From: Mytilus trossulus
Taxonomy: Eukaryota
Length of the DNA: 64,000 bases
Direction of reading: 5' to 3'
Assembly (NCBI RefSeq): GCF_036588685.1
Contig: NC_086380.1
Location: 23,870,001 to 23,934,000 of the forward strand
The notes beneath the pieces are model-generated. The model did not search any database and had not been told where the DNA came from. It worked only from the letters and a program-made list of their open reading frames with translations. A program made the position numbers and the translations under genes. Below, piece by piece: positions 332 through 19,240 of this stretch. How positions within the stretch are numbered: position 1 is the first letter of the stretch; the number at the start of each line of letters is the position of its first letter.

Positions 332-1196
332 CTCTTTCTGTGCTAGGAGTGCCTGATCAACTTCTGCCATTTCTCTTCTTTTTTCCAAAAGTCTTGTTGC
401 AGGTGTCAAGTGATCATCTTCCCGCTCAGGCATTTTGCTAATGAAAGAAAAACAGGAAACAAAGATTTTCTCTTTTTTCTCATATATATATGTTAAACGT
501 TACATACAAAGGGAGCATGATTAAAGATGGCCTTTCTCATATGCAATAACCAAGGGAATAAAACTTTGACATCCTAATACTAAATTTCTGGTCTCCATGA
601 AGGAAAAATCCCGGGCTTAAAATCCTGAGGTCCTGAATTAATAAAGTAAATCTCGGCATCCTGAAATCCAAAAAAACAGAATTCCCAGATCCCAAACGGG
701 TCAATCCCAAAATCCTGAACTTAAAAACAGTCGATCCCGGAATCGTGATACACCTTATCGCTATTAGATTTATCGGCCGGCTGACCCAGCTGCTGGAACT
801 TTTCCATTGTGGCGCCAGATATTTTGTTTTATGACGTCAAAATTTTACGGGAACCTGTGTGATATCCAGTAATGGTGGACAAATAGCAATAAGGTGTATA
901 AAGGTCCTATCCCCCCTCTTGTATGCGTAAAAGTTCAAGCTGCGGGTCAGTCAGGATTATTATAGCGATAAGGTGTATAGGGAAACATGACAGAAGAAAA
1001 CCACATTCTGCATATCTAGGTCTATAGTATATGTTTTCTTAAACTACTTCTTCGATTTTTTACATTGCACCAGTGTGAAATTCTTATGCATTATTTTTTA
1101 TATTCTACTTATTTCTAGACTACAAAATAGGAAAACGTACACAACGAGGGTATCCTCGAAGGTCGTCTTGAAGTATTCTTCCAAATCCACAGACAT
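332..1196 (-). CDS. CFAP73: CFAP73/CCDC42 family coiled-coil cilia protein, coding exons 1-2 (gene continues off the left edge)
   Basis: Exon 1 is 1196..1141 (ATG, MSVDLEEYFKTTFEDTLV, donor GT|gtacgt). Exon 2 is 437..332 (tag| ... KMPEREDDHLTPATRLLEKRREMAEVDQALLAQKE |gtattg). The exons join in frame (56+106 nt). EEYF and RLLEKR.E...DQAL.AQKE match the CFAP73/CCDC42 N-terminus as I recall it. Confidence 0.88.
751..896. mobile_element. MITE with CACCTTATCGCTATT TIRs and TA TSD, nested in another repeat
   Basis: ta|CACCTTATCGCTATT ... AATAGCAATAAGGTG|ta. A closely similar copy lies at 30165-30321 and an inverted end fragment at ~922-977. Confidence 0.8.
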
Positions 1197-1270
1197 TTTG
1201 ATGGTATAATGTTATTGTCTAAATAAAAACAGGAATAGTAAAGGGCACTTTTAAATTGTTGTTCAATGAT

Positions 1271-1505
1271 CCGCCATTTGTAAACCAGTCAGTAGTTGCC
1301 ATGACATCGAACATATCAAAAGTTTAAAAAAGTAGAAATTAACATTAAACCCCAATGATTTTCAAATTAAACTAAGATACAATCATTTATTTACACAAAT
1401 TTCACATTAAAAAGAATTCAATGAAATAAATATAAACAAAATACGCTTCCGGTTATGTTGACTTCCGGTAACTTTTCGAGGTCAAAAAACAAATCGAAAA
1501 TGGCC
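1271..1505. promoter_or_regulatory. Bidirectional promoter shared by CFAP73 and NipSnap
   Basis: Start codons at 1196 (-) and 1500 (+). X-box-like GTTGCCATGACATC at 1295-1308. YY1-like CCGCCATTT at 1271-1279 and AAAATGGCC over the NipSnap ATG. Two ETS/GABP-like CTTCCGG at 1446-1452 and 1462-1468. Confidence 0.65.
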
Positions 1506-4500
1506 AGCATTGTTTTGAAGCAAATATTTTCTAGAACAGCAACAGCTTCTTGTTGTCATGTTAGAGCCATCGCACAGAATTCAAGCAGGTACAATTTCTT
1601 TGTCGAAAAACATAGGTTAAATAACTTTGTTTGGTTTAAAGACCAAATTTGCAGACGAATTTTGTAACAGCTGATGATGCAATGGCTTTTCTTATGTGGG
1701 CATTGTCAGTATAGACCAATGACATTGAAGCATATTTACTGTACAATTTGATGTTCATTTAACTTATTTAGCTATAGGCAGATAGCTGATACTTAATGAT
1801 GAGTCCCCTAACGGCATAAGGTTATTTGTTAATCATTATCATTTTTTAAAGGTTTGATGAGTTTACTGAGGATCACAGAGTGATTTTCGCGCTTTAAGTA
1901 TAACGTTTACCATAAAATTCAGGCTGTGACATACCGTTATTAATAGGGACGAAAGACACCAAAGGGACAGTCAAACTCATAATCAAAAATAAACTGACAA
2001 TGCCATGGCTAAAAAAAAAAGACAAACAATAGTACACATGAAACAACATAGAAAACTAAAGAATAAACAACACAACCCCCCCACCAAAAACTAGGGGTAA
2101 TCTCAGGTGCTACTGAAGGGTAAGCAGATCCTGCTCCACATGTTGCACCCATCTATTGCTCTTGTGATAACAAATCCGGTAAATGGTATAATTTGGTAGG
2201 TCACATTCATTAAAGGGAAGGGGATTGTAGTTACGAAGTAAGGAACATATCCGATATCATTTGTGAAACGGTTATCTGTCAACAGAATTTTAAGGACCAA
2301 CAAAAGCATGTATTTTATCTAAAACATTTAAAGAATTTTTAACACTCCAAAAAAAATTAATACCTTTATTTTCATATGCTATATTACAAAAGGGAATAAC
2401 AAGTTCTTTGATAGAAGTAAGGGAGGAGGGATTAACAAGTTATTTGATAGAAGTAAGGGAGGTAGTTAGAAGCACTGATAGATTAGTAGTAGAACACTTA
2501 CTAGCTGCAGAACTTTAAAAGAGGGACGAAAGATACCAAAGGGACAGTCAAACTCATAAAATTAAAACAAACTGGCAACGCCATGGCTAAAAATTTTAAA
2601 AAGACAAACAGACAAACAATAGAATACACAACAAAACAATGGTCGCATCAACTTGACACGAAGTAAACATATCAATGTTTAAGTGAACTGTTTGATACAG
2701 TTTGTGTATATTTAATTACAAAATAAGGGTTTTCATAAATTTTTTAGGTTCACTGAATATCATATATATTTTTTTGTATTCTTGTTTAGTTATTGAGAGG
2801 TTCTTTGGTTAAGCTTTGGCTATCTAATTTTGCCATTTGAATTTGAAATTGTATAAATTTTTGAAATCTCTTATTTCAGATCTTTAAGCACATCCCATAC
2901 ACTGCTTTCTAATAAAGAGGCTGCTAAAGTGGAACCACAACAAGAAGAACAACAAACATCCAAAAATGGAGGATTCTTTAAAAACTTACTCAGAGTACGA
3001 ACATTAAATCCTACTAAAGAATCACATTCTAGTCTTCTTTCGTCCAAAGAAACAGTTTATGAAATACAGTGTAAGTACATGTAATAAGTTTTTTCGATGA
3101 ATATCATCTTAATTTCTTTATTATGATTAGTACTATAAGAACACATGGCTTGAAAATAACTTCTGCCATTAATATTCATGAATGGAAAGAGATTGGATAT
3201 ACCTCAATGAAACAGAAACATAACAAATACAAAAAACAAAAAGTCATCAAGAGTATTTTTGTAATGCTTAATAAATGCTATAATTAATTTAATGCACCGC
3301 CATGGCTTCAATATCAGGTTTATTTACTTGAAACAGGAGGGCCTTTCAATATAAAAAAAAAGTGAAAATACAGTACTCATTAGAAAATAATTTGGTTTTT
3401 AAATCTTTTGCACAAATTTTCTTTCGAATTTTCATATTTGTCATGTATGTGCTTTTGCATTTTCAGAAGTATGAAGCTAACAGGGAAAGTCAATTTGTTA
3501 GAAGCCTAAATGCAAATCTTAACACATTGTGTTTTGGGGTCTTCTCAAAATGTTTGTTTGACCCCTTTTGTTTATAACCATGTAGTATTTTGAGATTTCT
3601 TTTCTATGTAGTTCATGCTGTGAAACCTGAGTTTATGGAAGATTACTTAAATCAGTTGTAAGTAATATAGATTGTAATTAATGGATAGAATTTGTTTTTC
3701 AGGATCATTGTTTTAGCAGATATGAATAAGTGGTATCTCTGACATTGGATATGCCATTATTTTATCTTTTCAAATTACATTTCATTTCAAAGATAATTTA
3801 ATGGATTTCATCACAATTTTTTTTAATAATTATATAAAATTATACAAATGATAGATTTAGGTAGATGAAGTCAGTCTGTGACCTTCTGTAAGGCATAATT
3901 CTTTAATTTAACAAATTTGGCGTTGTTTTCGAGTGGCAGTCTGAGTTACATTTATAATATTTGTTTTTTACTTGTTCTTGGTTTATTTTAGTCACGGATT
4001 AAACTCAATACTTGTTGGTCCCTACATGAACTTTGTAAATTTGGAAACATTCAACATTTATTTTTGAGAAATGAAAAATATACTCAATTTCTGATCAACG
4101 AGGATTTAGTGCAAGAAGATATCAGTAATTTGAAAGAGCATGCTTCTGTAATCTACTATAAATGTACTTATTTCTTGTGTACTTATCTACACAAATGTCA
4201 AATTTATGTGTTTTTGAATTCATGGTACATTTTGTGTATTTCTGAAATTTCATATCTGCAGTATATACATTTTTTAACTTCAAAAAAATGAATTGGTTCT
4301 GTTGACCGAGACACATATACGAACCTCTCCTGTCTTTCTAGTACAAAGCAGAGTTGATATTCATATTGTTTTCATTTTGAATATGTATTAAATTGGCCAT
4401 TGGACATTTAATGGTCATAATTCATCATCATCTTAGGTTTAAGCTCACTTGGCCCAAATGATCTGTGTGATCAATTGATATCCTTGCCATCATCACCAGC

Positions 4501-7500
4501 TAATTTCAGCCCTTCATGGCATAAACTTTTCTATACATGTTGTTGATTATATTTTTAGGCAGTTAAGCTGCCTTAAGCAAGCACCCTGGATTTCTGTGCT
4601 ACCCAGTAAATGCTGAAATATGTGCCATTGTTATCATCTAGCTGACTACTTTATTATTTATAACTTATTGGGCAGTTTTTTCATACTTTTCATTCTGGAT
4701 TACAAAGAATATGACCAGAAAAACCTTAAATGATCGTCGATTTTCCCAACAGTTTTGAAGTTGCACATAGGAAGTAGAGCACATTAGGAATCCTTGTGTA
4801 GTTTATTATCCCCTGAGCTTTTGGTTAAGATGTCAAAGAACAAATGTATGAAATATTTTATATAAAAGACAAGTAGTTAAGATTTTCCAAATTGCAAAAC
4901 TCGTAGGAATATTATTTGTCAGTATATACGTCAGTGGTCTATTAATATAAGTTCAACTGATCACGCTGTTGGCGGCAATTTTGAATAAGAAGACGAAATT
5001 TTCGTATCTTTTAAATTTGGACGCAGGGTTTCAAATAAGCGGTGGTCCGAGGTCTGTGACCTTCCACTTTTGCAGACGGACTTACTTAATTACAAGCTAC
5101 GCCCGACGGACCTTGAAAGAAAGTAAAAAAATAACTTTACAAACATTTTTACCAAAGTTTCCTAAAAAATGATCTCAAACTTATTTTCATCATTTCTATT
5201 CATGACAGCGATGTTCAATTTGTTCAACCGCTAGCTTTATACAGAAAATCGCCGATAAATAATGTGTACATCTGAGTGAAATCGTATCTCACTTTCTGTC
5301 AAAAACAACACTGTAAACAAAATGGCTGCCGCGAGATTACAGTAATGGATCCGATTCCGGAAGCGGATAAGGGTAATCCCGGGTTTTGGGGCTATCAACA
5401 AAAAAAATCCAGACAGGTTACAAAATACATCTATGCATGGTAAATAAATATAAACACTAGAATTGAAAACCAATATTGTGTAAAAGAAAGAAAAAGCAGA
5501 AAATATTTTGTACACCAATTTTAATGTCAAAATCCAATACAAGTGACAGTTGGGAACAGTTTATCTAACAATATATATGTTCCTGGTAACAGTATAATTT
5601 TTTTTATCAGTGATAAATTTTGGTAATGCATGTTAAATGCTTTTCAAGTTAAACATATTAATGCAATTTCAAAGGTTATTTTTTTCTTCTCAATTTTGAT
5701 AGGTCAGTTAAAATAGCTGGAAGTTTCTTATATAAAAAAAGATGTGGTATGATTGCCAATGAGACAACTATCCACAAGAAACCAAAATGACCAAAACTTG
5801 GTAACGGTCAAGATCCCCACCCATATTCATAAGTCAATTACACTTCACTACAGAGTTCGACTCGTAACGGGAAGAAGAAGATGGGACAATATAACAAATC
5901 ATATGAAATATAGGTGGAGTTCGTGGGCCCAGTCTACCTCTTTCTGTTTGAGAATTTATAACGGTCGAGATCCACAATCTTAAACAATATATATTAATGT
6001 ATAGGACAATGTTACAAATCAAATAAATTATAAGGGGGTCCCAAAGGTCACTCTACACCTTCACGTTTGAGAACTTGGAAAAATTCGAGATCATCACCCC
6101 TTAACCATATATACTCATGTATAAGACTATATAACAAATCAAATGAAATATAAGGGAAGTCCCTGTGGTCAACCTACCCCTCATGTTTAAGAACTTTGAA
6201 ACAGTTGGGATCCCCAACTCTAAATTAAATGAAATATAGGGGAGTCCCTGCAGTCACGATTGAGAAATTGGAAACAGTCGAGATCCCCACCTTTAAATTA
6301 AACCATATATATTCATGGTATGACAACTAATCAAATGAAATATAGGGAGAGTCCTTAGAGTTACCCTACCCACTCTTGTTTGATAACTTAGAAACAGATG
6401 AGATCCCCAACCCTCAACCATATATATTCACGTATTGGACAATATAACAAATCAAATGAAATATAGGGGAAGTCACTGGGGTCCCCACCCCTCCTGTTTG
6501 AAAACTCGATAACAGTTGAGATCCCCACCCATAAACCATATATATTCATGTATGGGACAATATAAAAAATCATTGAAAAATAGGGATAGTCCCTAGGGTA
6601 ACCCCACACCCTCTTGTGTGTGTTTTGAGAACTTGTAAAAGATTTAGATACCAACGCCTAAACCATATTCATTCCTGTTTTTCATTTCAAAAAGATTGAA
6701 TGACATACAAGGTCAATCTCATAGCGTCATAGGCGACACATATGCATATCACTTTGCTAGCCCCTAACACCTGTCATTTTATTCCAAACTTAGACATCAT
6801 GGACTTGGGGTGAAGGTGGGAGTCATTTACATTTACTATGGACAGGTCAGTCAGACCCCACCATTGATCCCTTTAGTAGTAAACATTTGTCTGATTTGTG
6901 TCTCATAACTTTTGTGCTGTAAAACACACTTGGTTTTCTTTCCAGGGAAGCAAGTTCATTCATACTTTTACAAGCTCGTACTAAAGTCAACTTGAACTAC
7001 TAACAGTCAACTAATACAAACAATTACGCCCAACTAGAAGAACTGCAATCATTGCAAATTTGTACCACTGCTGACTCATGAAAGACTCATGACCTTCGTG
7101 GTCATGTGCGTTGCTATTGAAAACCTTGATAAATATGAATTATTTGCCTTAAATGAACATAAATGCACAGTCATATATGAATGTTTAATGTTTGTTCTTT
7201 TAAATCTTTTAAAAAAAGTTAAAGCAACATTGCCACAGTTTTCATAATTATGTTTGCCTTGGTTTTTGGTTAACTGCCTACAGTGCTTACAGCACTTTGA
7301 TTATATACAAAAGCAAAATGAAAAGGTCGGGTCAACAAATTAGGGATAGTACATTTGTAATTGCGAAATATCCTACACAATTATTCCAACATAGTTCAAC
7401 TTCACAAATGCCTTGAAATTAAATCTGTCAGGGCTAATGGACTACATTGGAATGTAAATAATTGATAAATCCTGTACAAGTTTTCTGAAGGGATTTAGTT

Positions 7501-10500
7501 TTGATATACAAGTATCAACTTAAAACCTGATTATACACTGTTAATTATATAAATGAAGATATTTGGGTTTTTTTGCACTTTTGTGTGTGTATTATCAAGG
7601 GTGTTTTATTTCAGCTCAAGGTTTCAAGGTCTGATGCATGAAAAGAAAACAGGTGCAAATTTAGTGGCCAGTTTTACAGTGGAAATAGGAGATCAAGATG
7701 AAGCTGGTATGTTAATAGGTTGATGTTATAAAAAACAAGAAGATGTGGTATGATTGCCAATGAGACAACTATCCTCAAAAGACCAAAATGACACAAACAT
7801 TAACAACTATAGGTCACCGTACGGCCTTCAACAATGAGCAAAGCCCATACAGCATAGTCAGCTATAAAAGGCCCCAATAAGACAATGTAAAACAATTCAA
7901 ACAAGAAAACTAATGGCCTTATTTATGTAAAAAAATGAATGAAAAACAAATATGTAACACATAAACAAACGACAACCACTGAATTACAGGCTCCTGACTT
8001 GGGACAGGCACATACATAAATAATGTGGCGGGGTTAAACATGGTCCTTTTCTTTTCTTATGAATAGTTTTACATGTCCTATCAGGGCCTTGTATAGCTTA
8101 CTTTGCCATAAGGGTTTTGCTCATTATTGAAGTCTTTGGGAAGAACAATTAGAAATACTCTCATCTAATCAGTTAATCCCTGTTGTATAGTTTTCTCAAT
8201 GGCAATCATACCGCATCTTCATATTTTTATATGCAAATCATTGATAGTAATTAGGATTGACAAGAATGGATGTCTCCACCTCAGTGAAAATAAGGCAATA
8301 GATAAGTTACAATTAGTAATATGCTTTGAAACATTGTTTATCAATTTAATCAGTTTGCAAGAAGATATATGCTAAAAGGCCAAATATTTTTCTATTGTTT
8401 AAAATTCTCAAATCTTCAAAAGAAATTGATTGACATATATTGAAATATATTTGCAGTGTCCATTTTTATATGAACAGTAGATGAGAATACAGCAAATATG
8501 ATATGTTATTTCAAAATCAGCAATTTTAACAGATATTTTTCAGTTATTTTTTGTTGACTTCTAAACTTTGCATTATTTCCCCTTAGACATTGAAAATTGC
8601 ATAAATCTTCAATAATCATTAACGACTAGCTTATATTTCAGTACACATATGGGAATATAAAGGTGGTTATCCAGTTTTAAACAATGCTACAGAAATTTAC
8701 AGAACAGATCAGGTTAGTGTACTGTGTTTTATAATTCTTCTAGGAAGTTATAAAGAAATAATTAAAAGAATATGTTTTGAGATTAGAAATGTAATTTTAT
8801 ATTAAAATTTTGTTGAGTAAAAAAAATAATTATTTATGCATATATTGAAATCTACTACACAGTTTTCATGGTTTTAGATAATTATAGATTATTGTTGATT
8901 ATCTCAACGAGATTGATTTTCTCGCTTGAGCTGGATGACATCTGTTTATCGCTATTTTACCTATGACGATGTTGTCAATTTCAATGTCAATTTCGTTAGC
9001 AACGCCACATGGCCTCCTTAGTTTCTAGTGATAATTTTTCCATCTCAAGCGAGAAGCATGATATGAAAATTATCACCAAAAAAGATCAAAGGAAAAATGC
9101 ACAAAATAGCGATAATATGAATTAATGTGATTCCAAGAAGCTATCAAGGTTTTAGAGTTGACATCTGTATCATGTATACTTTTGCTTTTTCAAGATGCGA
9201 CTCTTTGTTGCTTATTTATTTCTCTCTCAATTTAAGTAAGGAAAACTATAAGAGTATTGAAAAAGAAACTGATAACTGTCAGATCAGATACTGAGATAGC
9301 TATCTATATAGGCTGTATGCTTAAAAGAGTAGATGTGATTCATTTATAGCTATAGAGTTTATCAATGTTTATTGTGATTTTGCTTGATGTATTTATTTAA
9401 CAACATGAGATATGAAATCTGTACTGAAAAGGCTACAAATGAAAATTTCACACTCTTTAAGAAGAGGCCTTAGTTTTATCTTGCTCAGCCAAATCAAGTC
9501 AAATACAACATTTCTATTATTCAGAAATCCTACCAGTGCGGAATATAGATTCCTACACTGCAACAAGTGTATTACGATATTTCTCCACTCGAGACAGTTA
9601 AATTTAATTATCTAAAGCACGAGGCTTGCCAAGCTCTTTAAATAACTTAAATTTAACTGTCGAGATTCAAAGATTTTCAGAAACTTGTGTTCTTTATATT
9701 TGACGTCATCAGGCATGGTCACCTTTTTTCATGACGTCACAATAGGAAAATTCAGAAAGAACAAAACATTTAGACTTCATAATCAAATTTCAACTAATCA
9801 TTTGCCGAGAACATATCTTTCACTAGTGAAGAGAAATATTTTTCTCACACCGTTCAGGAAATATGAAAGTAGCACAAAAATTAGAGAATGCATGTTCTTC
9901 TATCCCTTAATCATAGACTCCTTTTGTGACCTACATTTTTTACAATTTGATATATTACAATTTTTTACAAACATTTTATCTTTCTTTTTTACAGGACTTT
10001 ATAGAATACAGATTAGCCAGAAATAAAATGTTAAGATCCAGAAAGAATCAGATCTTGTTAGCATTTAGTTTTTGGCCAAAACTTGAACCAAGAAAGGGTA
10101 AAAACATTTATGAGATGAGAAGTTATACACTAAAGGTATGAATCATTGGTAAAGGATTTTCTGATCTGTCTGTCACTTATCAGCTAAAAAATTTGGTTTA
10201 CCAAAATTTGATAACACAAGTTTCCATACAACAAAGGGACAGGTAGGATTGGATTTGGATGGTTATGGCTCAAAATCATTTAGGAATTCGAGGCAAAAAA
10301 GGAGAAAAAAAGGGTTTCCTTGCTAATAGACAATATTAAAGCAGTGTAAGGGAGGTTATCCTGAAATAAAATTGTACAATGTTGGATTACCTTCCTTACG
10401 CTGACTTTATATATCTATTTTAGACTTTTATGATGTATTTAAATGGGTAATTAGGGTTGCAAACTCCATCAGAAATTTGAATTTCAGATGTCAGAAATCA

Positions 10501-13500
10501 AACAACATTTTTGCATATAAGAGGTTGGTTGGTTTTGTTTTTTTTTGTTTTTTTTTTGGGGGGGGGGGGGGGGGGGTCCAATATGCAACATTTCAGCAGA
10601 AAATGTCTATCGGTCATGAAACAAGAAACATTACAGCAGACCCAGTGCATTTTCTTATATCCTATAACTACATTTTGTCTTAAAAATTATATTTTTTTTT
10701 CAGGCTGGCACAATGATAGAATGGGCAAATTGTTGGTAAGTTATTCAAACATTATTACCTTTAATATATATAGAAAAACAAGTCTCTTGAAAAAAAACCT
10801 TAAAAGTGGATTAAAAGGAGATGATAGTAAACATCAATGAGGCAGCAACATAAAACATATAACAAAACTGTCAAAAGACTTGCAATCTTCAATACAAGAC
10901 CTGAGTTTAAACAACATGACAAACTTTTAATAAAGCCGATAAAAATTAACAGACACAATCGGAGATCTGTTGTAAACACTCAGGAAAATACATGAAGAGA
11001 AAAATAAAGACATGGCTCCTGACTTGGGAGAGATATATCAACCTGAAGCTGATGGTCAATTAAATGACATTTATGCAAGTAGGTGCAGGTACACATTTTG
11101 TTATTGCCTATTTCAAAGAACATGTATGGTAAAGTAATATACAAAAGATTTGATTGCTATTACAATGGCAATGTTCAAACTGAATATTTAATGAGTTAAA
11201 AGTAAGATTAAGTAAAAACTATGTACATTACAGGGGAACTTGGTGAGCATTATCTGTTCAGATTTTGTTACTTTTTTGTTCCGTTAGAAAAAAATCATAG
11301 TTGTCTTTTATTATTTCAAAAAGTAAATTTTTTAACTGGAAAACAAAAAATCTTTAATATTTTAAGACTATTGTTCTTACTTTTAAGTTTTAGCGCATCA
11401 ATGTTTTTACAAATGCACACTTTTACATCCATATAGATTTCCCATCAATTACAGGGCAATATAGATTTCAGATAATTTAAAAACTGTAGACAATATACAA
11501 CAATTGTGCAGTTATTTGATATATCATGGAACATTGTATTTATTATTTTACAATATTACAAGGGATTATACATATTTCAAGACAAGCAAGTGCTATTTGT
11601 TAAGCAGATAAGTGTCATTAGCACTCATACCACATCTTCTTATATCTGCATAATTTTATTTCAATGAAATTGTATGCTGAACTGATAACATACCGGACCA
11701 TGTTTTATTTTATGAACCACATGTTTACAACTTGATTTTCAGATAACTTCAAAAGTGAAAGGAGAATTTCTTGTATTTGATTTTTTTCTCCAGGCAAACA
11801 AAGAAGTATATAACCAAATTAGCAAGTAAAAACGAAGAATTTTATCAAAGAATTATTTGAATATTATTGCAGGTGATACTGTATTAATAGACAATTACTC
11901 TTTAAGCAGACATATTTTTTTCTCTCTACAGGTGAACCAAGGCTTTCATTGAACATAAACTGAGCATTTTCAGAAATACAGTGATACAGCATACTTTTTT
12001 TTTATTTTTTAGATACCAGGTTATTTTTCAATAGGGTTTGGATTGGGTTTACAAAAAAGAAAATCATCAACCAACAAACCAATCTCCAGTTTTTTGTTTT
12101 TTTATAAGGTAGAGAGGCCAGGCCTTATTATTGACAGGGAATATATTGTCATTTAGGCATGTTATTGGACAAAGCTCCTTGAGACAAACATTTTGAGCTA
12201 TTAATTTTCTTAATCGGATATACAGTTCAAAAGTTATGGTTGTTCAAAATTTCCAATTCATCCCCCCTTTTTTTATCCAAGATGGCCACCATTAATTAGA
12301 CATTGAAGTCCCTTTTGGAAGGTTAATATTGATCCACATTGACATATATCAACCACATATTGCTTGTTTTCTGATAGTGTATACCACATTCTATTATAGT
12401 ACACTTTAGCGGCCGTATTTTGACGTTGCCGTCCTCTCTATATAAGGATAAGTCACTCCAAAGTCAGTCAACATAAATTTGGTCATTACTAATTTGTACC
12501 TCTTACTGTGACTGTTATGTATATAATGAAATAAGCATTTTGTGAAGTAGGAAATGTACGGGAAAGTGCTCAAATTCCAAAGTTGACTTTACTTTAGCAA
12601 AATGGCCCCCAAAAATAGATTAGAGAATAATGGGGAGTTAAACTTAAAATATAAAGATTAGAGAAAAATAATCTACAAAATTAAAGAATACAGAATGAGA
12701 TATGCTATCCAGACACTCATGCAGTCTCTTTTCATGGTACTTTCATTTTTATTTTTTTTCATTCATCGTGTGTAAAAAAAAGTCCAGTGAAAAGCTGTGC
12801 ATAGCAGGGGAACCAAGGCAACACAATCAATTGTTTTGCCTTGTTATTACACCAGTTCACCATAATGGTGTTTTGAGATGATGTTACATAGGTATTAAAA
12901 CAGATCTTTGCCTTGTCTGAACAAAGTTGTTGCAATGCAGGTTTTATATTTTTTTCTTCTAATTTTTAATCCCAATTTAAAGGGCTAGAGGTATACAGTC
13001 CCGAGGACAGGGAGAGGAACCTGTACTGGGTGTATTTTCACAGATAGGTGACCTATATATGGTCCACCATGTTTGGGGTAAGTTGTGAGTGGACCTAACT
13101 CAGTCCACATCTGCAAGCTTCACCCTCATAATATAAAAAAATATTTCAGCCAATTTCAGAACCTCAAATGTAATAACAATATGTATTGAAATTGTATTGC
13201 TGCTATCAAATTCAGTATCGAAATTGTCTTTTTCAAATTTATTTTAGAAAACATATCTTTATTTATATTTTTAAAATTCAAAATTGAAAGCAATGATATT
13301 GTTATTGCATTGTCAAGGTACTTTTCAAGTTTGTTCTTTCACCTGAAAAAAAACCCAAAACACTCTCTGCTGCTAGCCCACCAGGCTAAGCTTGTAAAAG
13401 TTTTATTAGGCCTTAAATGACTTCTTCTACAGGCCAATTGAATTCATACAAATTTAACTGCTGCTTCAAAGTAGGTGCACCATTTCAATATTTGAAACTT

Positions 13501-16500
13501 TTGACTTTGCACTATAGTACTTCTTCTTCAAAACCAGTCATTAAATAGTTTAAAAAGACCATATCTTAATTCTCTGTTGAAAGAACAATAAGCCAGGATT
13601 AAAACAAATTACCTGTCAGAAATTGGCTGGCATGATTCATGTTTACTAATATGTTTTGATATTATATGTGTGTAAGTTTTGTTTTTTTGCATTTTGCTTT
13701 TGATATTCATGCTTGTATAAAGCAAAATGTCAATAAAAAAGTACCATATATGTTTATCTTTTTATTTTTTTTTATAAACATTCTTATCTTACCAAGAAAA
13801 AAGTATATGTTGCATTTTACTGACATTTTGTTTATGTACATTTTTGTGTCAATTAATATATGATTTGCGTAAAATTTTGAGTTTTATGTAAACTATTTCT
13901 GCATGGCAATTTTTGTGTTTGAAATTCCAATCTGAAATTGATATTGTATATATGTTTGTACATGTACACACAGTATTTTCACTTCATAAATTGAATGTAT
14001 CTTTTTCATCCTTTATAACAAAAATCCATTTATTTTCATTGGCTACATTGATAACAAGCTTTTGCTTATTAATGATTTCCTAAGCAGAGATATTTTTTAT
14101 AGTCTTTTTAAGTAGCATTTAAGACATTATTGCTTTTATTTGTGTGTGAACATCCTTATACAGTATTGCTAATTATAATTGAAGCTTAAATTTCTTGGAA
14201 ACTTTGTCACTTCCACCTTTGGTAGTTTTTCTAGGGATATAGAACAAATATTTCACTTTGTTTAAACTTGGTTGTAATATAATTTGAAATGAGAAAGTAT
14301 TTAGAATGTTTGACTGAATATAGAAAGTCTTCCAAAATACATCAATTATTTGCTTTGTTGGGGAAAACAAATTTTACCAAAATTGTTTTGAATTTTATTT
14401 TTGCATTCTTGCCCTTTTAGTAATTCATGATTTCAAACTTTATTGGATACTGAGTAACATTTTCAAAGCATATAGCAATATTTTGTGATTGGTCAATAAT
14501 TTCCTAAACAGTGGAAAATCAACCAATGGCATAATGTCATTTTCATTTTGATGTTCAATCATAGAAGTTACCCATAATCCTTAGAAATTCTGAAACAGGA
14601 AATTATGGTACAGAATTTTTAAGATAACAGTATTAGATGTTCAGATATAAATACTAATGCTTATGTAAATTTAATAACGCAATACTAATTCATTTCAGTG
14701 TGAATTGCTTACATTTAACATATGAGTTGCTGTTAATATGTATGAAAGTGCAAATGCTTTTAAAATAATTTTGAAATGTGCAGTTGTTTGAATTAAAGTG
14801 ATTTCCCCTCTCATTACTAATTCAAACAGAAAGAAATGTATTGAAACGACTATCAAAGACATTCTATGTAAACATTTAAACATGTCAATACATTTTTTTC
14901 TGAAATAGTCATTGTATTTAGGAGCAGATGATTCATGCTACAGAAACTATCTGATCATTTGTGCTTTTTAAGAGTTGCTTAGAGCCTGATTTTTATTGTG
15001 CTTTTGCATGTTATTTTCAGTTTTACCTCATGGCTTGTACAGAATATCATATGCGTAGTACACAGTGCAGTACTGGTTAGAAGATTGAAAACTTCTTACA
15101 ATTTTCTAGTGCATGCTGAAAGAACTATTAGTTTTCAGGCTGAAATCTCTAGTCGATATGACTGGTTCGTTAGGACTAAAAACCAATTACAACTATTAAG
15201 AATGCTTTAGATAAGATTTTGATTTGTTGTATAGGGCCCGTGGTATAGAAAACCGGAAGACAAATAACGAGCCTGTCGGAGGTTTCTTCTCACATCTAGG
15301 AGAACAATATGTTGTACATCATCTATGGGGTATGTTTTCTCTATAGCATGTGACATCCCCCAGGTACAGTATTGTTCTGTTGTCAATGTCTGCATAAATT
15401 TCAGTCCCATTGCATGTTAAAGAAAATCTAAAAAAATCTTTAGGTTGATTACTGTTGATTCATTTATTTTAGTTGGTAGCAATTTTCGTGGATTGAGGAA
15501 AACTTGTATTTCGTGGATATTTGATTTCGTGGCTTTTTAGAAGTCTGCATAAACTCCTATATACAAAATGTTATTCGTTGGACATTTGAATTTGTGGTTT
15601 TGGGGTTACCACGAAATCTACGAAAATTAGTATCCAACAAATAATAATGAATCCACAGTAATTAAATGGCATGTACTAATCAAAGTTGATAAAATGAAGA
15701 ATTCAGAATGAAATGCACTGTTATTATTGACGAATTAAAACATAAACACTTTATAGCACTGAATTTCAACTTATTAAAAGCACTGTAACTTAAAAAAGTA
15801 TAAGCTTTTAGAACACTTTTATACTAATTTTTTTATCATCTTTAAAAATAACTGTATTATAATGTATATATGATTAATCCAAATCTGAAAAAAAATTACA
15901 TTAATATAACTCTTAGTAATGTTAAATCAACTGTTGAAATCATCAGAAATGCCACATATTTTGATACTGGTAGGCGAATATTTCATTCATATATATGTCA
16001 TTTCTATAAGATCATATTCTAATTCCAGCAAGTCTAATAGCATTAAAACAGAATGAATACTAAGATTCTTATAGTTTTTTTCCTGGTAATATCAAATACA
16101 TGTGCAGCAAGTTTTAGTGACAGAATATACAGTAGTAAATATACGGGGCTAAGTCATTTTTACAGTGTACACTTTTTCCTAGAGGATTTATACAACTTTT
16201 TTGGCAAATAAATATTTTAATACCTCAAGTATCACTAAACCTCAAAAATGTAAAAAGTAAAAGACACATACAGCAAAAGATAAGTGAAAAATTTCACCTA
16301 GTCATATCAGAAATTAATGTCTTGGTAACTGAAATTTGAAATTACAACGCCCTTATTTAGCTATATATGACACTGAATAATTGTCTTTCATGGAATATGG
16401 AAAATTACTTACAATAGTATATAGAAATATATATCATTTAGGGTGAAAGAATAACCATTACTCCATGAATTCTTCTCCAAATTTTAATTTTCAATTTTAA

Positions 16501-17354
16501 CATTTGATCGTCTCAAGAACGGACTACAATTAAAGTTATAAAGTATTCTTCCAATGATCAAAATGTGACTGAATGTAGACTTTTAAAAACAATTGAGGCC
16601 TTGTTTTGTACCTTTCTTCATTAGTCTTTCATTACTGTTGTAGGATATACAGATTTACAGACCCGTAAAGAGACAAGAGAAGCAGCATGGAGCAGACCTG
16701 GCTGGGATGAATGTGTTGCTTACACAGGTAATAAATGGTGCACATGTGGTTGAAGATGAACATAATGTTACTGTTCCATCTTACTGTTGATTCATTATTA
16801 TAAGTTGGATAACACGTTTTGTAAAAAAAATTAAGCAACTGGAAACAACAGATTTAAGTTTTCAATGAATTTCAAACTTTGTTAAATATGAGATAACCCT
16901 CCAACAGAGAACCCATAATGTAGAAGTAAGCAACAATTAGTCATAGTACGACCTTCAACAATGAGCTAAATCCCAACTGTATAGTATGATAAACAATGCT
17001 TAAAAATGAAAATTATCAGAAGAGAAAACAAAGGGCTTGATTAATGTACAAAAAAATGAACAAAAAAATGTGATTTACAGCAACAGAAGATACAAAATGT
17101 CTTTGGGTTAAACATATTTCCTGGCATCCAATCCCTAACTTGGGACAGAAGTGTAACAGCACAACATAAGAACAAACATTACAATCAGTTGAAAAAAAGC
17201 TATAAAACTCATCAGCCTATTTATTATCTATTTCCAAGTTTTCATTGTGAAACCTACACCATTCTCTTAACTATACTTTTCTATTTCAGTGCCATTGATA
17301 AGACATATGCAGTCTAGAATCCTGATACCAACACCTTTCTCACCTCTCCAGTAG
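1500..17354 (+). CDS. NIPSNAP: Protein NipSnap (NIPSNAP1/2-like, mitochondrial), 10 coding exons with two alternatives for exon 8; 301 aa
   Basis: Exons 1500-1588, 2880-3070, 3612-3657, 7615-7706, 8642-8712, 9995-10135, 10704-10735, [12983-13077 or 15235-15329], 16644-16727, 17290-17354. All GT-AG, total 906 nt in frame. Family motifs: [104 protein letters not shown]. The basic, acid-free N-terminus resembles a mitochondrial presequence. Confidence 0.95.
1945..2632 (+). repeat. Interspersed repeat, two copies (GGGACGAAAGAYACCAAAGGGACAGTCAAACTCAT...)
   Basis: A near-identical ~110-nt head occurs at ~1945 and ~2520. Confidence 0.65.
5790..6680. repeat. Degenerate tandem array, ~120-bp unit, ~7 copies
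   Basis: Recurring GAGATCCCCACC..AACCATATATATTCATGTAT.GGACAATATAACAAATCAAATGAAATATAGGG unit. Confidence 0.8.
7731..8041 (+). repeat. High-copy interspersed repeat (AAGAAGATGTGGTATGATTGCCAATGAGACAAC family), near full-length copy
   Basis: Other copies or fragments at ~5735, ~8190 (-), ~16890, ~22560-22870 (-), ~41690, ~45660-45935 (-), ~48320, ~50325-50680 and ~59035. Confidence 0.85.
12983..13077 (+). CDS. NIPSNAP: NipSnap exon 8a (mutually exclusive alternative)
   Basis: aag|G ... G|gtaagt, 95 nt, encodes (W)[31 protein letters not shown](G); phase 2 in, phase 1 out. Confidence 0.9.
15235..15329 (+). CDS. NIPSNAP: NipSnap exon 8b (mutually exclusive alternative)
   Basis: tag|G ... G|gtatgt, 95 nt, encodes (W)[31 protein letters not shown](G); same phases as 8a. 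Confidence 0.9.
15450..15660. mobile_element. TA-flanked MITE (Tc1/mariner-like), TACTGT.GATTCATT...AATGAATCCACAGTA
   Basis: Terminal inverted repeats with TA flanks. Truncated copy at ~16782; a related CTGT-ended family at 25272-25491 and 38343-38539. Confidence 0.7.
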
Positions 17355-19240
17355 GAGAGTTACTCAGGGAGAACGGACAACGTTCAAAGATTGCATTATA
17401 GACTAAACAGTATACAAAAAACACAGAATCTTACAAGTTGTAGGATAGCATGTTTATTTCTTGTTTATAAATTAAAAAGAGTTGATAGAAATACTTGTAT
17501 TGTATATCAGACATTTCAAATGAAAACTTATTTTGTTTTCATTCTGATAGGATTATGATTTTTTGTAAGAAAAAAATATATATAAAAATGTTTTAGGTAC
17601 ATGTATTTGTAAAAATATAATTTCAAGATTATGCAGTTAGACTAGATGATTAACTTATACAGTAGATATTTAAAGATAAATAAAGTCACTGCATTTAAGA
17701 AGCAGAATTCAATAATTAAAACCTGTAAACATGTAGCTGAATTTTAGAAATAGTGATGCCAATCTTGTGGTGTTGATTTGTAGATCACTTTGAAGATTTT
17801 AATGGTTTACTTGACCTTGTCCTCATTTTCATGGTTCGTCAATGTTTTTGTAATACCTGTATAAACCCCTCAATCTCAAAGTTCCAAATGTCGTTCAATC
17901 ACAATCAGTAAAACAGGGAAGACATTTCAATATGTCAATTTTTTTTGTTGATTTTGATATTTCTAGTAAGTTTCTTATGATTCATTGTGACCAGTTAATA
18001 TATTTTTTTTTATAACTACAAAATTCTTTACTTTATATTTTATCAGAATATAAATGTGAATTTGAGATTTTTATAGTATACAAAAAACTCTTTTATTAAG
18101 GGCAAAACTGAATTTGAAATTTGGATAACTTGGTTTTTTTTAAGAAACACTAAACTTGAATGTGAAGGTCTTATAGCACTTTGTTGTATTATTTACATTT
18201 TTGTATGTACGTGTACATGTGTCGTTAGTTCTGGTTAAAGTTTATGTATACCTATAATACAAATACATATGAGAAATGTTATTGAAAATTTTTTTTGGAA
18301 TGAATAAAAACTAGCTGAGCGATTGTATTTGTGAATGGTTTGATTGTTCACCTTATCTGTTTTAATTATGAAGACTAAAGCAGAGTTATCTCCCTGTTGT
18401 TTCATATCTATATCTTATGTTACTGGGTTGTATTTGGTGCATGTTCATTGTGGTTTGTGTTAATGTTCAATTTTCTCTTTTTATTATATTATATGTTTTT
18501 TTTCATGGAATGAAATGAGTTGTTAAATAATACTGTCGGTTTAAAAGTATTGATATTTTACTGAAAATAAAATTATTTAAGATATGGAAATGTATAAGTA
18601 AAATATATAAAATAAATTTAATAAATAAAAAGATAAGTTTACCATATTTATTCTTTTAAAAAAAGAACAATTATGTATAATTGAAAAAACTTATTACAGA
18701 GTTTTATAGAACTTGAGAAAAGTAATTGCAATATATGTAGTATTATTTTTCAAATAAATGCATTTTGTCCATTTAAACTATTCTTTATTTGTAATACTTT
18801 TTTGGTGAAGTTTATTTTAACTGTAAAATGAATTGCAAACAAATTGAAATAATCTTTTAGTATTTAACTAATTGTTTGAAATTATTAAGGACTATGTTGT
18901 ACAGGATTGTTATAAAACTTATCATATTATTGAGTAAAACTCGAACTGTACCTGCTTTTAAACTTACAATTAAAAGACAAAATAAAATGTCTGCCATATT
19001 ATAATACAAATGTATAGTGAAGACTGAGATCTTAAAGCATGAGAAAATTTGAAAATGTTAGAAAATAAAAAATACTGTCTATAGCCACCATATATTGCAT
19101 TAGATCTCACAAAGTCTATGACAGCATTATATAATGATCTATAAACACATCTGTACTCACTTTCTTAGATGTGTGTAATATAGATGGAATATATTTTAAA
19201 ACAATAAATTGTTATTTAAGTGAAAAATCTTGACTTTTTA

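Follow-up and report, generated by a model that had tools for sequence, protein, structure and literature searches.

Two homologous versions of exon 8 in the NipSnap gene of the mussel Mytilus trossulus

The NipSnap gene of Mytilus trossulus carries two versions of its eighth coding exon, 8a and 8b. The two are very probably old tandem duplicates that are spliced one at a time between exons 7 and 9, that predate the split between bivalves and gastropods and that are both under purifying selection. The gene lies in a window of 64,000 nt of genomic DNA, which is the whole stretch analysed here. A preliminary description of this DNA had called the exon pair hidden. It is not, because the exons of the window translate exactly to the RefSeq proteins XP_063396001.1 (isoform X1, with 8a) and XP_063396002.1 (isoform X2, with 8b), which are automatic Gnomon models without a description, and models of this kind carry both versions in more than 20 other species. 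RefSeq also models an isoform X3, which has 8b plus a retained intron. Both protein forms are thus already in RefSeq, and the case is one of sound, fairly ordinary alternative splicing. A literature search found no paper that names the pair or says how old or how widespread it is.

Exon anatomy, reading frame and protein segment

The two 301-aa proteins are reproduced exon by exon by a ten-exon chain that contains 8a in one case and 8b in the other (Table 1). The two exons are adjacent and homologous, have the same length and phase, are each preceded by AG and followed by GT, and lie 2157 nt apart, as is expected of tandem duplicates. They agree in 17 of 31 residues (55%) and in 57 of 95 bases (60%). 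The coordinates, length, phase, splice sites and residue identity given in the preliminary description were all reproduced. Chance resemblance is excluded because the same two peptides are annotated as isoforms in many other species. The acceptors of both exons had been described as weak, and within the NipSnap gene this is true: 8a is the sole exon with an A at −3, and the pyrimidine content at the 8b acceptor (0.53) is the lowest among the acceptors of the gene.

Table 1. Features of the NipSnap gene and of the exon 8 region (positions in the window)
Feature	Position	Strand	Remarks
NipSnap gene, coding part	1500..17354	+	Exon-by-exon match to XP_063396001 (X1), AG/GT borders, consistent phases; tblastn
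Coding exons 1-7	1500-1588, 2880-3070, 3612-3657, 7615-7706, 8642-8712, 9995-10135, 10704-10735	+	
Exon 7, constitutive, 32 nt	10704..10735	+	Upstream partner of 8a and 8b; donor TTG|gtaagt
Exon 8a, 95 nt, a-type	12983..13077	+	Acceptor aag, donor gtaagt; major form in RNA sampled
Intron 8a-8b, 2157 nt	13078..15234	+	
UGCAUG motifs, sense, in 8a-8b intron	13900, 15005, 15110	+	
199-nt block within 8a-8b intron	14878-15076		Identical in second copy
199-nt perfect block containing 8b	15189-15387		Identical in second copy
Exon 8b, 95 nt, b-type	15235..15329	+	Acceptor tag, poor pyrimidine tract; donor gtatgt; minor form in RNA sampled
TAG on double inclusion	15246..15248	+	Read from sequence; phase from 8a/8b comparison
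UGCAUG motif, sense	15411..15416	+	82 nt downstream of 8b donor; kept in second copy
Exon 9, constitutive	16644..16727	+	Downstream partner of 8a and 8b; contains TAA 16666-16668
Coding exons after exon 8	16644-16727, 17290-17354	+	Stop in last

Since 95 is not divisible by three, including both exons or skipping both shifts the frame into early stops. When 8a precedes 8b in the same mRNA, the stop comes four codons into 8b. When exon 7 is joined directly to exon 9, the TAA in exon 9 lies 59 nt upstream of the donor, which is at 16727. The claim that the 301-aa frame is kept only by single inclusion, with stops at these two places, was confirmed. Double and null products would be expected to be removed by nonsense-mediated decay (NMD).

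The two isoforms differ only at residues 222-252. Both match the Pfam NIPSNAP family (PF07978) far above its cut-off of 22.3 bits (1e-40 and 1e-42; 138.3 and 144.9 bits). The family matches two stretches of the protein, the better of them at residues 202-299, and the protein is predicted to consist of two tandem ferredoxin-like domains, each in the order beta-alpha-beta-beta-alpha-beta. The single-domain structure matches are 1vqy, 2ap6, 5kak and 5ixu, with TM scores of 0.77-0.90 normalised to the target. The swapped segment had been placed in the core of the NIPSNAP domain. It can be located more closely: within the second domain it takes in the tail of the first helix, the loop after it and the beta2-beta3 hairpin. 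Structural models of the two isoforms have the same predicted fold, with pLDDT of 81-94 over the segment, and are not independent of each other because both were built on the same alignment.

Isoforms in other animals and the age of the pair

Isoform pairs that differ only in the exon 8 segment are annotated in the bivalves Mytilus (five species), Pecten, Argopecten, Mizuhopecten, Ostrea and Sinanodonta, and in the gastropods Haliotis (three species), Babylonia, Littorina, Pomacea, Aplysia and Physella. In Patella, both types are found as separate proteins of P. vulgata and P. caerulea. Besides Mytilus, the groups with the two-isoform pattern are scallops, oysters and a unionid on the one side, and abalone, limpets, caenogastropods and heterobranchs on the other.

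How old is the duplication? Exon 8a keeps the ancestral second half of the segment, SQ-G-D/E-L-Y, while the b-type exons of bivalves and gastropods have in common a derived motif, S/T-H-L/I-G-E/Q-Q-Y. The duplication predates the bivalve-gastropod split because this derived motif is present in both classes. In a tree of the 31 columns of the exon, a b-type clade holds bivalves together with gastropods (support 92/85), and a and b never pair with each other within any bivalve or gastropod species. When each bivalve species is paired with each gastropod species, assigning a to a and b to b is better than the cross assignment in 34 cases of 35, a count that is partly circular because the gastropod labels were assigned from the motifs. 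The order is a then b in the gene models of M. coruscus, Batillaria, Tegillarca and Magallana, which wrongly read through both exons. Approximately unbiased (AU) tests on the 31 columns rejected neither a single clade of all b-types (p 0.18) nor a single clade of Mytilus a and b (p 0.21), so the age of the duplication does not follow from the tree by itself. The proposal that these are homologous tandem duplicates of ancient origin is nevertheless upheld by the a and b orthologues in bivalves and gastropods.

The pair could be far older than molluscs. Exon 8 also alternates in a chiton, in crinoids and in acorn worms. Antedon, Anneissia, Ptychodera and Glandiceps each have isoform pairs that differ at this very exon, and in amphioxus the border of exons 7 and 8 bears an optional insert of 26 aa, the start of which resembles exon 8. 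One early-bilaterian duplication would then have survived as alternative exons in molluscs, crinoids and acorn worms, amphioxus would have reduced it to a cassette, and vertebrates, arthropods and most echinoderms would have lost it. The grouping of crinoid type 1 with hemichordate type 2 on starred branches points the same way. However, the comparison spans 31 columns only, the mollusc and ambulacrarian types are unpaired both in the tree and by identity, and many losses are required. This deeper origin is possible, though we consider it rather unlikely. The alternation of exon 8 in the chiton, crinoids and acorn worms may have either a common or a repeated origin. For the gene as a whole, a likewise rather unlikely reading is that NipSnap is a hot spot at which homologous alternative exons recur or are very ancient, with an exon 8 pair that is early bilaterian or at least of separate origin in molluscs and in the ancestor of the ambulacrarians. 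The pair would have been kept for more than 0.5 billion years through two beta-hairpins that give the second domain different partner or ligand specificities, and the switch would have been lost in vertebrates and arthropods.

Expression and conservation of 8a and 8b

The RNA data are contigs from four runs, and contigs drop rare forms. The joint between exon 7 and 8a (10735>12983) is present in all four runs, at a depth of 46-273. The joint between 8a and exon 9 (13077>16644) is present in two runs, and a third run shows an 8a tail directly in front of 16644, as a loose end. In two runs, contigs break exactly at the borders of 8b (15234/15235 and 15328/15329) and continue with 26 and 21 letters that are unlike the genome. 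Their depth is ~21, about one tenth of the 198-273 seen for the 8a joints in the same two runs. Clipping of 8b by allelic mismatch is unlikely because 20 nt upstream and 8 nt downstream of the exon are identical in a diverged second copy of this sequence. Part of the 8b signal comes from incompletely spliced RNA, since one side of the 8b contigs continues into unspliced intron. Among the best-supported joints listed, which rank above 68 further rows, neither those that join 8b to its partners (10735>15235 and 15329>16644) nor those for double inclusion (13077>15235) and double skipping (10735>16644) are present, as may happen to rare forms in contigs. A search of the stop-free stretch around 8b (15215-15343) for short spliced fragments gave no candidate, an outcome that carries no weight because of the length filter in that search. 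The default form in the sampled RNA is 8a; 8b is the minor form and is probably regulated.

The second copy, which lies on C17 of the same assembly, is roughly 8-16% diverged. It is identical to 8a at 94 of 95 bases, the single change being synonymous, and to 8b at all 95, against 84-92% identity in the introns around the two exons. One and the same 8b peptide is carried by the X2 isoforms of four species, namely M. californianus, M. galloprovincialis, M. trossulus and M. coruscus. Together with the orthologues of each type, these comparisons agree with the earlier suggestion of selection on both exons, and they indicate that both are under purifying selection.

The shallow 8b contigs and their attachment to unspliced intron could also mean that 8b is a noncoding alternative in Mytilus, either a poison exon that sends transcripts with 8a to NMD and lowers NipSnap output, or a relic that annotation pipelines retrieve through its homology. 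The stop after four codons on double inclusion and the absence of a 7-8b-9 contig among those listed would fit such a role. This reading is improbable, as a poison exon would be read in another frame and meet its stop after four codons, so that nothing would preserve the single-inclusion frame of 8b. Yet its 31-residue peptide is unchanged across the four Mytilus species and has orthologues in oysters, scallops, unionids and gastropods, and its bases fully match the diverged copy. Moreover, oyster b-type proteins are full-length from transcript-sized Logan contigs (1.0-1.6 kb), and these contigs, together with the RefSeq X2 models, support a productive b-type mRNA.

Less probable still are independent, lineage-specific duplications in mussels, scallops, gastropods and so on, with convergent similarity and a young Mytilus pair: the AU test does leave room for a Mytilus clade of a and b, the b motif is missing from the chiton pair, which the tree does not resolve, and duplication recurs at other exons of NipSnap in nemerteans and a brachiopod, but the low likeness of 8a and 8b in bases and residues, the b motif and b clade that cross both classes, the failure of a and b to pair in any species of either class and the constant a-then-b order in four read-through models all speak against it.

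Possible control of exclusivity and comparison with known systems

What could keep the two exons apart? Under the preferred reading, 8a and 8b would have come from one exon of the single-copy M. trossulus NipSnap gene that was duplicated in tandem long ago, and one or the other is spliced between exons 7 and 9. Exclusivity then probably has two layers. First, the two weak acceptors probably compete, so that control lies in the choice of splice site, and this choice may be adjusted by factors that recognise the conserved sequences on either side of 8b, where the UGCAUG motifs lie. The motif downstream of 8b is a candidate Rbfox-type enhancer. Second, products with both exons or neither would be frameshifted into early stops and cleared by NMD.

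Two other mechanisms are ruled out. Steric exclusion is contradicted by the length of the intron that separates 8a from 8b, and U2/U12 incompatibility does not apply, as both donors are GT and U2-like and both acceptors are AG. An inverted-repeat search of 10736-16643 gave no convincing candidate for docking/selector RNA pairing; the top-ranking pairs measure 14-34 nt, are 71-94% complementary, AT-rich and chance-like, and have no shared arm. Exon 6 of insect Dscam1 is controlled by docking and selector sites. Competing RNA structures control mutually exclusive exons in human ATE1 (PMC7797038). NipSnap resembles such clusters in its tandem homologous pair, its long intron and the conserved intronic blocks near the regulated exon, but differs from both in that the inverted pairs of its exon 8 region look like chance.

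Homologous mutually exclusive exon pairs are known from clusters in C. elegans (PMC4165533), and a general model of them has been described (PMC6071210). Like the pairs that are policed by frame and NMD, 8a and 8b are adjacent, homologous, equal in length and phase and both conserved; they swap the same structural element, and their length is not a multiple of three. Unlike in those pairs, use is strongly skewed to 8a, and exclusivity and NMD are here predicted from sequence. For the evolution of splicing, this is one more old, frame-policed exon pair, and no concept is changed by it. Different phyla have gained homologous alternatives to several exons of NipSnap, including exons other than exon 8 in the nemertean and brachiopod genes.

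The swap of a helix end and a beta-hairpin, conserved in bivalves and gastropods and with parallels in crinoids and acorn worms, points to a region of the domain where variation matters, and 8a and 8b offer two natural, ready-made variants for binding or import assays. PMC12842286, citing Abudu et al. 2019, describes the vertebrate paralogues NIPSNAP1 and NIPSNAP2 as proteins of the mitochondrial matrix by which depolarised or damaged mitochondria are marked for mitophagy. Mussel NipSnap belongs to the same family, has the same two-domain architecture (PF07978) and likewise provides two variants per organism. The suggestion that splicing does in the mussel what these paralogues do in vertebrates nevertheless fails in the exon 8 segment. 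Differences between the vertebrate paralogues are spread along the entire protein and almost lacking in this segment, whereas those between the mussel isoforms are confined to it: shark NIPSNAP1 and NIPSNAP2 differ at 4 of the 31 positions, and 8a and 8b at 14.

The NipSnap gene model and its existing annotation

NipSnap is a gene of current interest, and its exon 8 pair, which was read correctly from the raw sequence, is genuine: two alternative exons that are old and conserved. As a feature, the pair is of an ordinary kind, and public annotation already models it. A homologue search started from exon 9995-10135 against a representative protein library returned NipSnap proteins, and the family was gathered with a chiton protein from those matches as query. 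The coding model, fixed by matching exon after exon to a database protein, has 301 residues with either version of exon 8 (8a or 8b). The window exons translate without mismatch to two isoforms of the M. trossulus “protein NipSnap-like”, X1 (XP_063396001, containing 8a) and X2 (XP_063396002, containing 8b), both of which score far over the Pfam NIPSNAP cut-off. A third RefSeq isoform, X3, contains 8b with the intron downstream of it retained. The preliminary description called the pair hidden; it is not, because the automatic RefSeq annotation of the same species already lists both products. Elsewhere, several deposited models are over-long: P0284 (M. coruscus, 335 aa), P0152 (Batillaria), P0151 (Nucella), P0175 (Tegillarca) and P0291 (Magallana). 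These read through both versions of exon 8 or fuse pieces of each, and are annotation artefacts of the tandem pair.

Coding exons of NipSnap in the window
Feature	Position	Strand	Remarks
Coding exons before exon 8	1500-1588, 2880-3070, 3612-3657, 7615-7706, 8642-8712, 9995-10135, 10704-10735	+	
Exon 7	10704-10735	+	leaves Trp codon open
Exon 8a	12983-13077	+	95 nt, borders aag/G ... G/gtaagt
Exon 8b	15235-15329	+	95 nt, borders tag/G ... G/gtatgt
Exon 9	16644-16727	+	completes Gly codon
Coding exons after exon 8	16644-16727, 17290-17354	+	

The anatomy of the pair is as first described: two exons of equal length and phase with valid splice sites (AG before, GT after), each supplying the last base of the Trp codon and the first base of the Gly codon. 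Recomputing their similarity returned the same figure of 17 identical residues among 31 full codons, with 57 of 95 bases equal. The predicted stops were likewise verified. Reading 8a and then 8b yields TAG at 15246-15248, and joining exon 7 straight to exon 9 yields TAA at 16666-16668, 59 nt upstream of the final donor at 16727. The sequence thus shows a frame rule: double inclusion and double skipping both run into early stops upstream of the last junction. The claim that both acceptors are weak holds in relative terms, within this gene, since 8a alone among its exons has an A at acceptor position −3 and the pyrimidine tract of 8b is the poorest of all (0.53).

Use and choice of the two exons

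Which of the two exons is used? Contigs from four runs were compared with 10704-16703; they are spliced, and hence derive from RNA. The joint 10735>12983 (exon 7 to 8a) occurs in all four runs at a depth of 46-273, the joint 13077>16644 (8a to exon 9) occurs in two of the four, and in a third run the tail of 8a is a loose end ahead of 16644. Therefore, 8a is the main form in all four runs. No 8b joint is among the best-supported joints listed for these runs. Contigs do end at the borders of 8b. In run X2 (runs share such names with the isoforms), record 22 (depth 21) spans 14878-15328 and breaks off precisely at the 8b donor, followed by 21 letters that do not match. In run X3, record 30 (depth 21) begins right at the 8b acceptor, preceded by 26 non-matching letters, and continues into the downstream intron, which is the structure of RefSeq isoform X3. 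Record 14 of run X10 passes through 8b unspliced. Clipping due to allelic mismatch could leave such ends, but is unlikely because the bases adjoining both 8b borders are identical in the diverged second NipSnap copy of the same assembly (the C17 copy). The contig ends suggest that both 8b splice sites are used, at about one-tenth of the level of 8a, and that some of the RNA is incompletely spliced.

Two variants lie inside 8b in RNA contigs of runs X1 and X10. The A>T change at 15258 replaces Lys with Met, the state in the M. edulis X2 protein, and the A>T change at 15280 leaves the residue as it is. An M. edulis-like allele is thus present in some runs. In all four runs, the depth of RNA contigs climbs into the thousands over two intronic stretches, 11504-11703 and 15304-15703, where internal joints and loose ends are numerous. 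The second lies immediately downstream of 8b, its start overlapping the bin that holds the last bases of 8b. Both stretches probably belong to a family of repeats that is abundant and transcribed.

How might the choice be made? The weak acceptor pair and the long invariant flanks of 8b are suggestive as its basis. A factor that binds UGCAUG may take part: these flanks contain three sense copies (15005, 15110 and 15411) within ~410 nt, where ~0.15 would be expected at the window's density, although this count is post hoc. All three are retained in the diverged C17 copy. A search around the exon pair for RNA complementarity of the docking/selector type found none. Steric exclusion is ruled out by the 2157-nt intron between 8a and 8b, and spliceosome-type incompatibility by the U2-like GT-AG sites of both.

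Selection and the swapped segment

The C17 copy is a whole NipSnap gene (G000:C17:1493512-1509435, loci L005 and L006) that corresponds to 988-18077 of the window. Identity is 99.5-99.9% up to 12101 and falls abruptly to ~88% from 12460 on; the copy looks like a haplotig with two parts of very different history and a recombination or introgression break within intron 7. In intron 3, the internally repetitive stretch 5881-6678 may be a degenerate tandem array, as its matches to the C17 copy (65-73% identity) are at shifted positions. Introns in the diverged part are 84-92% identical, versus 94/95 bases for 8a (the single change being synonymous), 95/95 for 8b and 83/84 for exon 9. A difference-free block of 199 nt (15189-15387) encloses 8b, a second of 199 nt lies at 14878-15076, and the one that surrounds 8a measures 92 nt. 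Four species, M. trossulus, M. californianus, M. galloprovincialis and M. coruscus, have exactly the same 8b peptide, and M. edulis has it with one change; the 8a peptide has at most three variable positions across Mytilus and is always intact. As first proposed, selection acts on both exons: the C17 identity and the conserved peptides show that it is purifying, and if anything stronger on 8b.

The swap was also correctly placed within the NIPSNAP domain. AlphaFold models of both isoforms, made from the same alignment (mean pLDDT 78), predict a disordered N-terminus of ~70 residues, followed by a tandem pair of beta-alpha-beta-beta-alpha-beta domains; single domains match solved bacterial NIPSNAP proteins with TM 0.77-0.90. 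In both models, the swapped residues 222-252 fall in the second domain, where they complete helix 214-228, form loop 229-233 and supply most of hairpin 234-242/247-254. The differences between 8a and 8b concentrate in the helix end and loop, the hairpin turn and several strand positions that trade side chains of different size. Both forms have the same predicted secondary structure.

Age, spread and related exon duplications

Homologous mutually exclusive exons that arose by tandem duplication and are policed by the reading frame are well known (for example PMC4165533, PMC6071210), and the NipSnap pair resembles them. A full-text literature search of incomplete coverage, on alternative or mutually exclusive splicing and on exon duplication in NipSnap, returned no paper on the pair. 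The proposed likeness to the vertebrate NIPSNAP1/2 paralogues is weak: in shark, these differ at 4/31 positions of the exon 8 segment, against 14/31 between 8a and 8b.

Spread was surveyed by cluster look-ups and pairwise comparison of isoforms. Pairs that differ solely in the exon 8 segment occur in bivalves (five Mytilus species, Pecten, Argopecten, Mizuhopecten, Ostrea and Sinanodonta) and gastropods (three Haliotis species, Babylonia, Littorina, Pomacea, Aplysia and Physella). In Patella, both types are found among P. vulgata and P. caerulea proteins, not as one species' annotated pair. The 8a-like a-type keeps the ancestral second half S-Q-x-G-D/E-L-Y of cnidarians, vertebrates and arthropods; the 8b-like b-type has a derived motif, S/T-H-L/I-G-E/Q-Q-Y, common to bivalves and gastropods. 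In a 31-column tree, the b-type clade holds both classes (support 92/85), and a never pairs with b of the same bivalve or gastropod species. Like-with-like assignment is more similar than cross assignment in 34 of 35 bivalve-gastropod species pairs, a partly circular count because gastropod exons were labelled by motif. AU tests on this tree had too few columns to decide anything. Read-through models order the exons a then b in M. coruscus, Batillaria, Tegillarca and Magallana. In line with the ancient duplication first proposed, we conclude from these comparisons that the duplication is older than the bivalve-gastropod split. The segment ranges from 29 to 32 residues; as the types differ by indels of whole codons throughout, the frame rule is preserved.

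The same exon alternates in the chiton Liolophura, the crinoids Antedon and Anneissia, and the acorn worms Ptychodera and Glandiceps. Mollusc and ambulacrarian types do not match up in the tree or in the comparison of types, and starred branches join crinoid type 1 to hemichordate type 2; the pairs may go back to a single duplication in an early bilaterian or have arisen several times independently. In amphioxus (Branchiostoma P0411/P0410 and P0415/P0417), some isoforms carry 26 extra residues where exons 7 and 8 meet; this optional insert opens like exon 8 (W-A-K-A-I/V), and may be a decayed exon 8 duplicate turned cassette exon. Isoforms of the nemerteans Tubulanus (P0201/P0307) and Lineus (P0308/P0209/P0309) and of the brachiopod Lingula (P0210/P0310) differ by homologous swaps of other exons, which correspond to exon 4, exon 6, the last exon and exon 2. 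Thus, exon duplication recurs in NipSnap at several sites and in different phyla.
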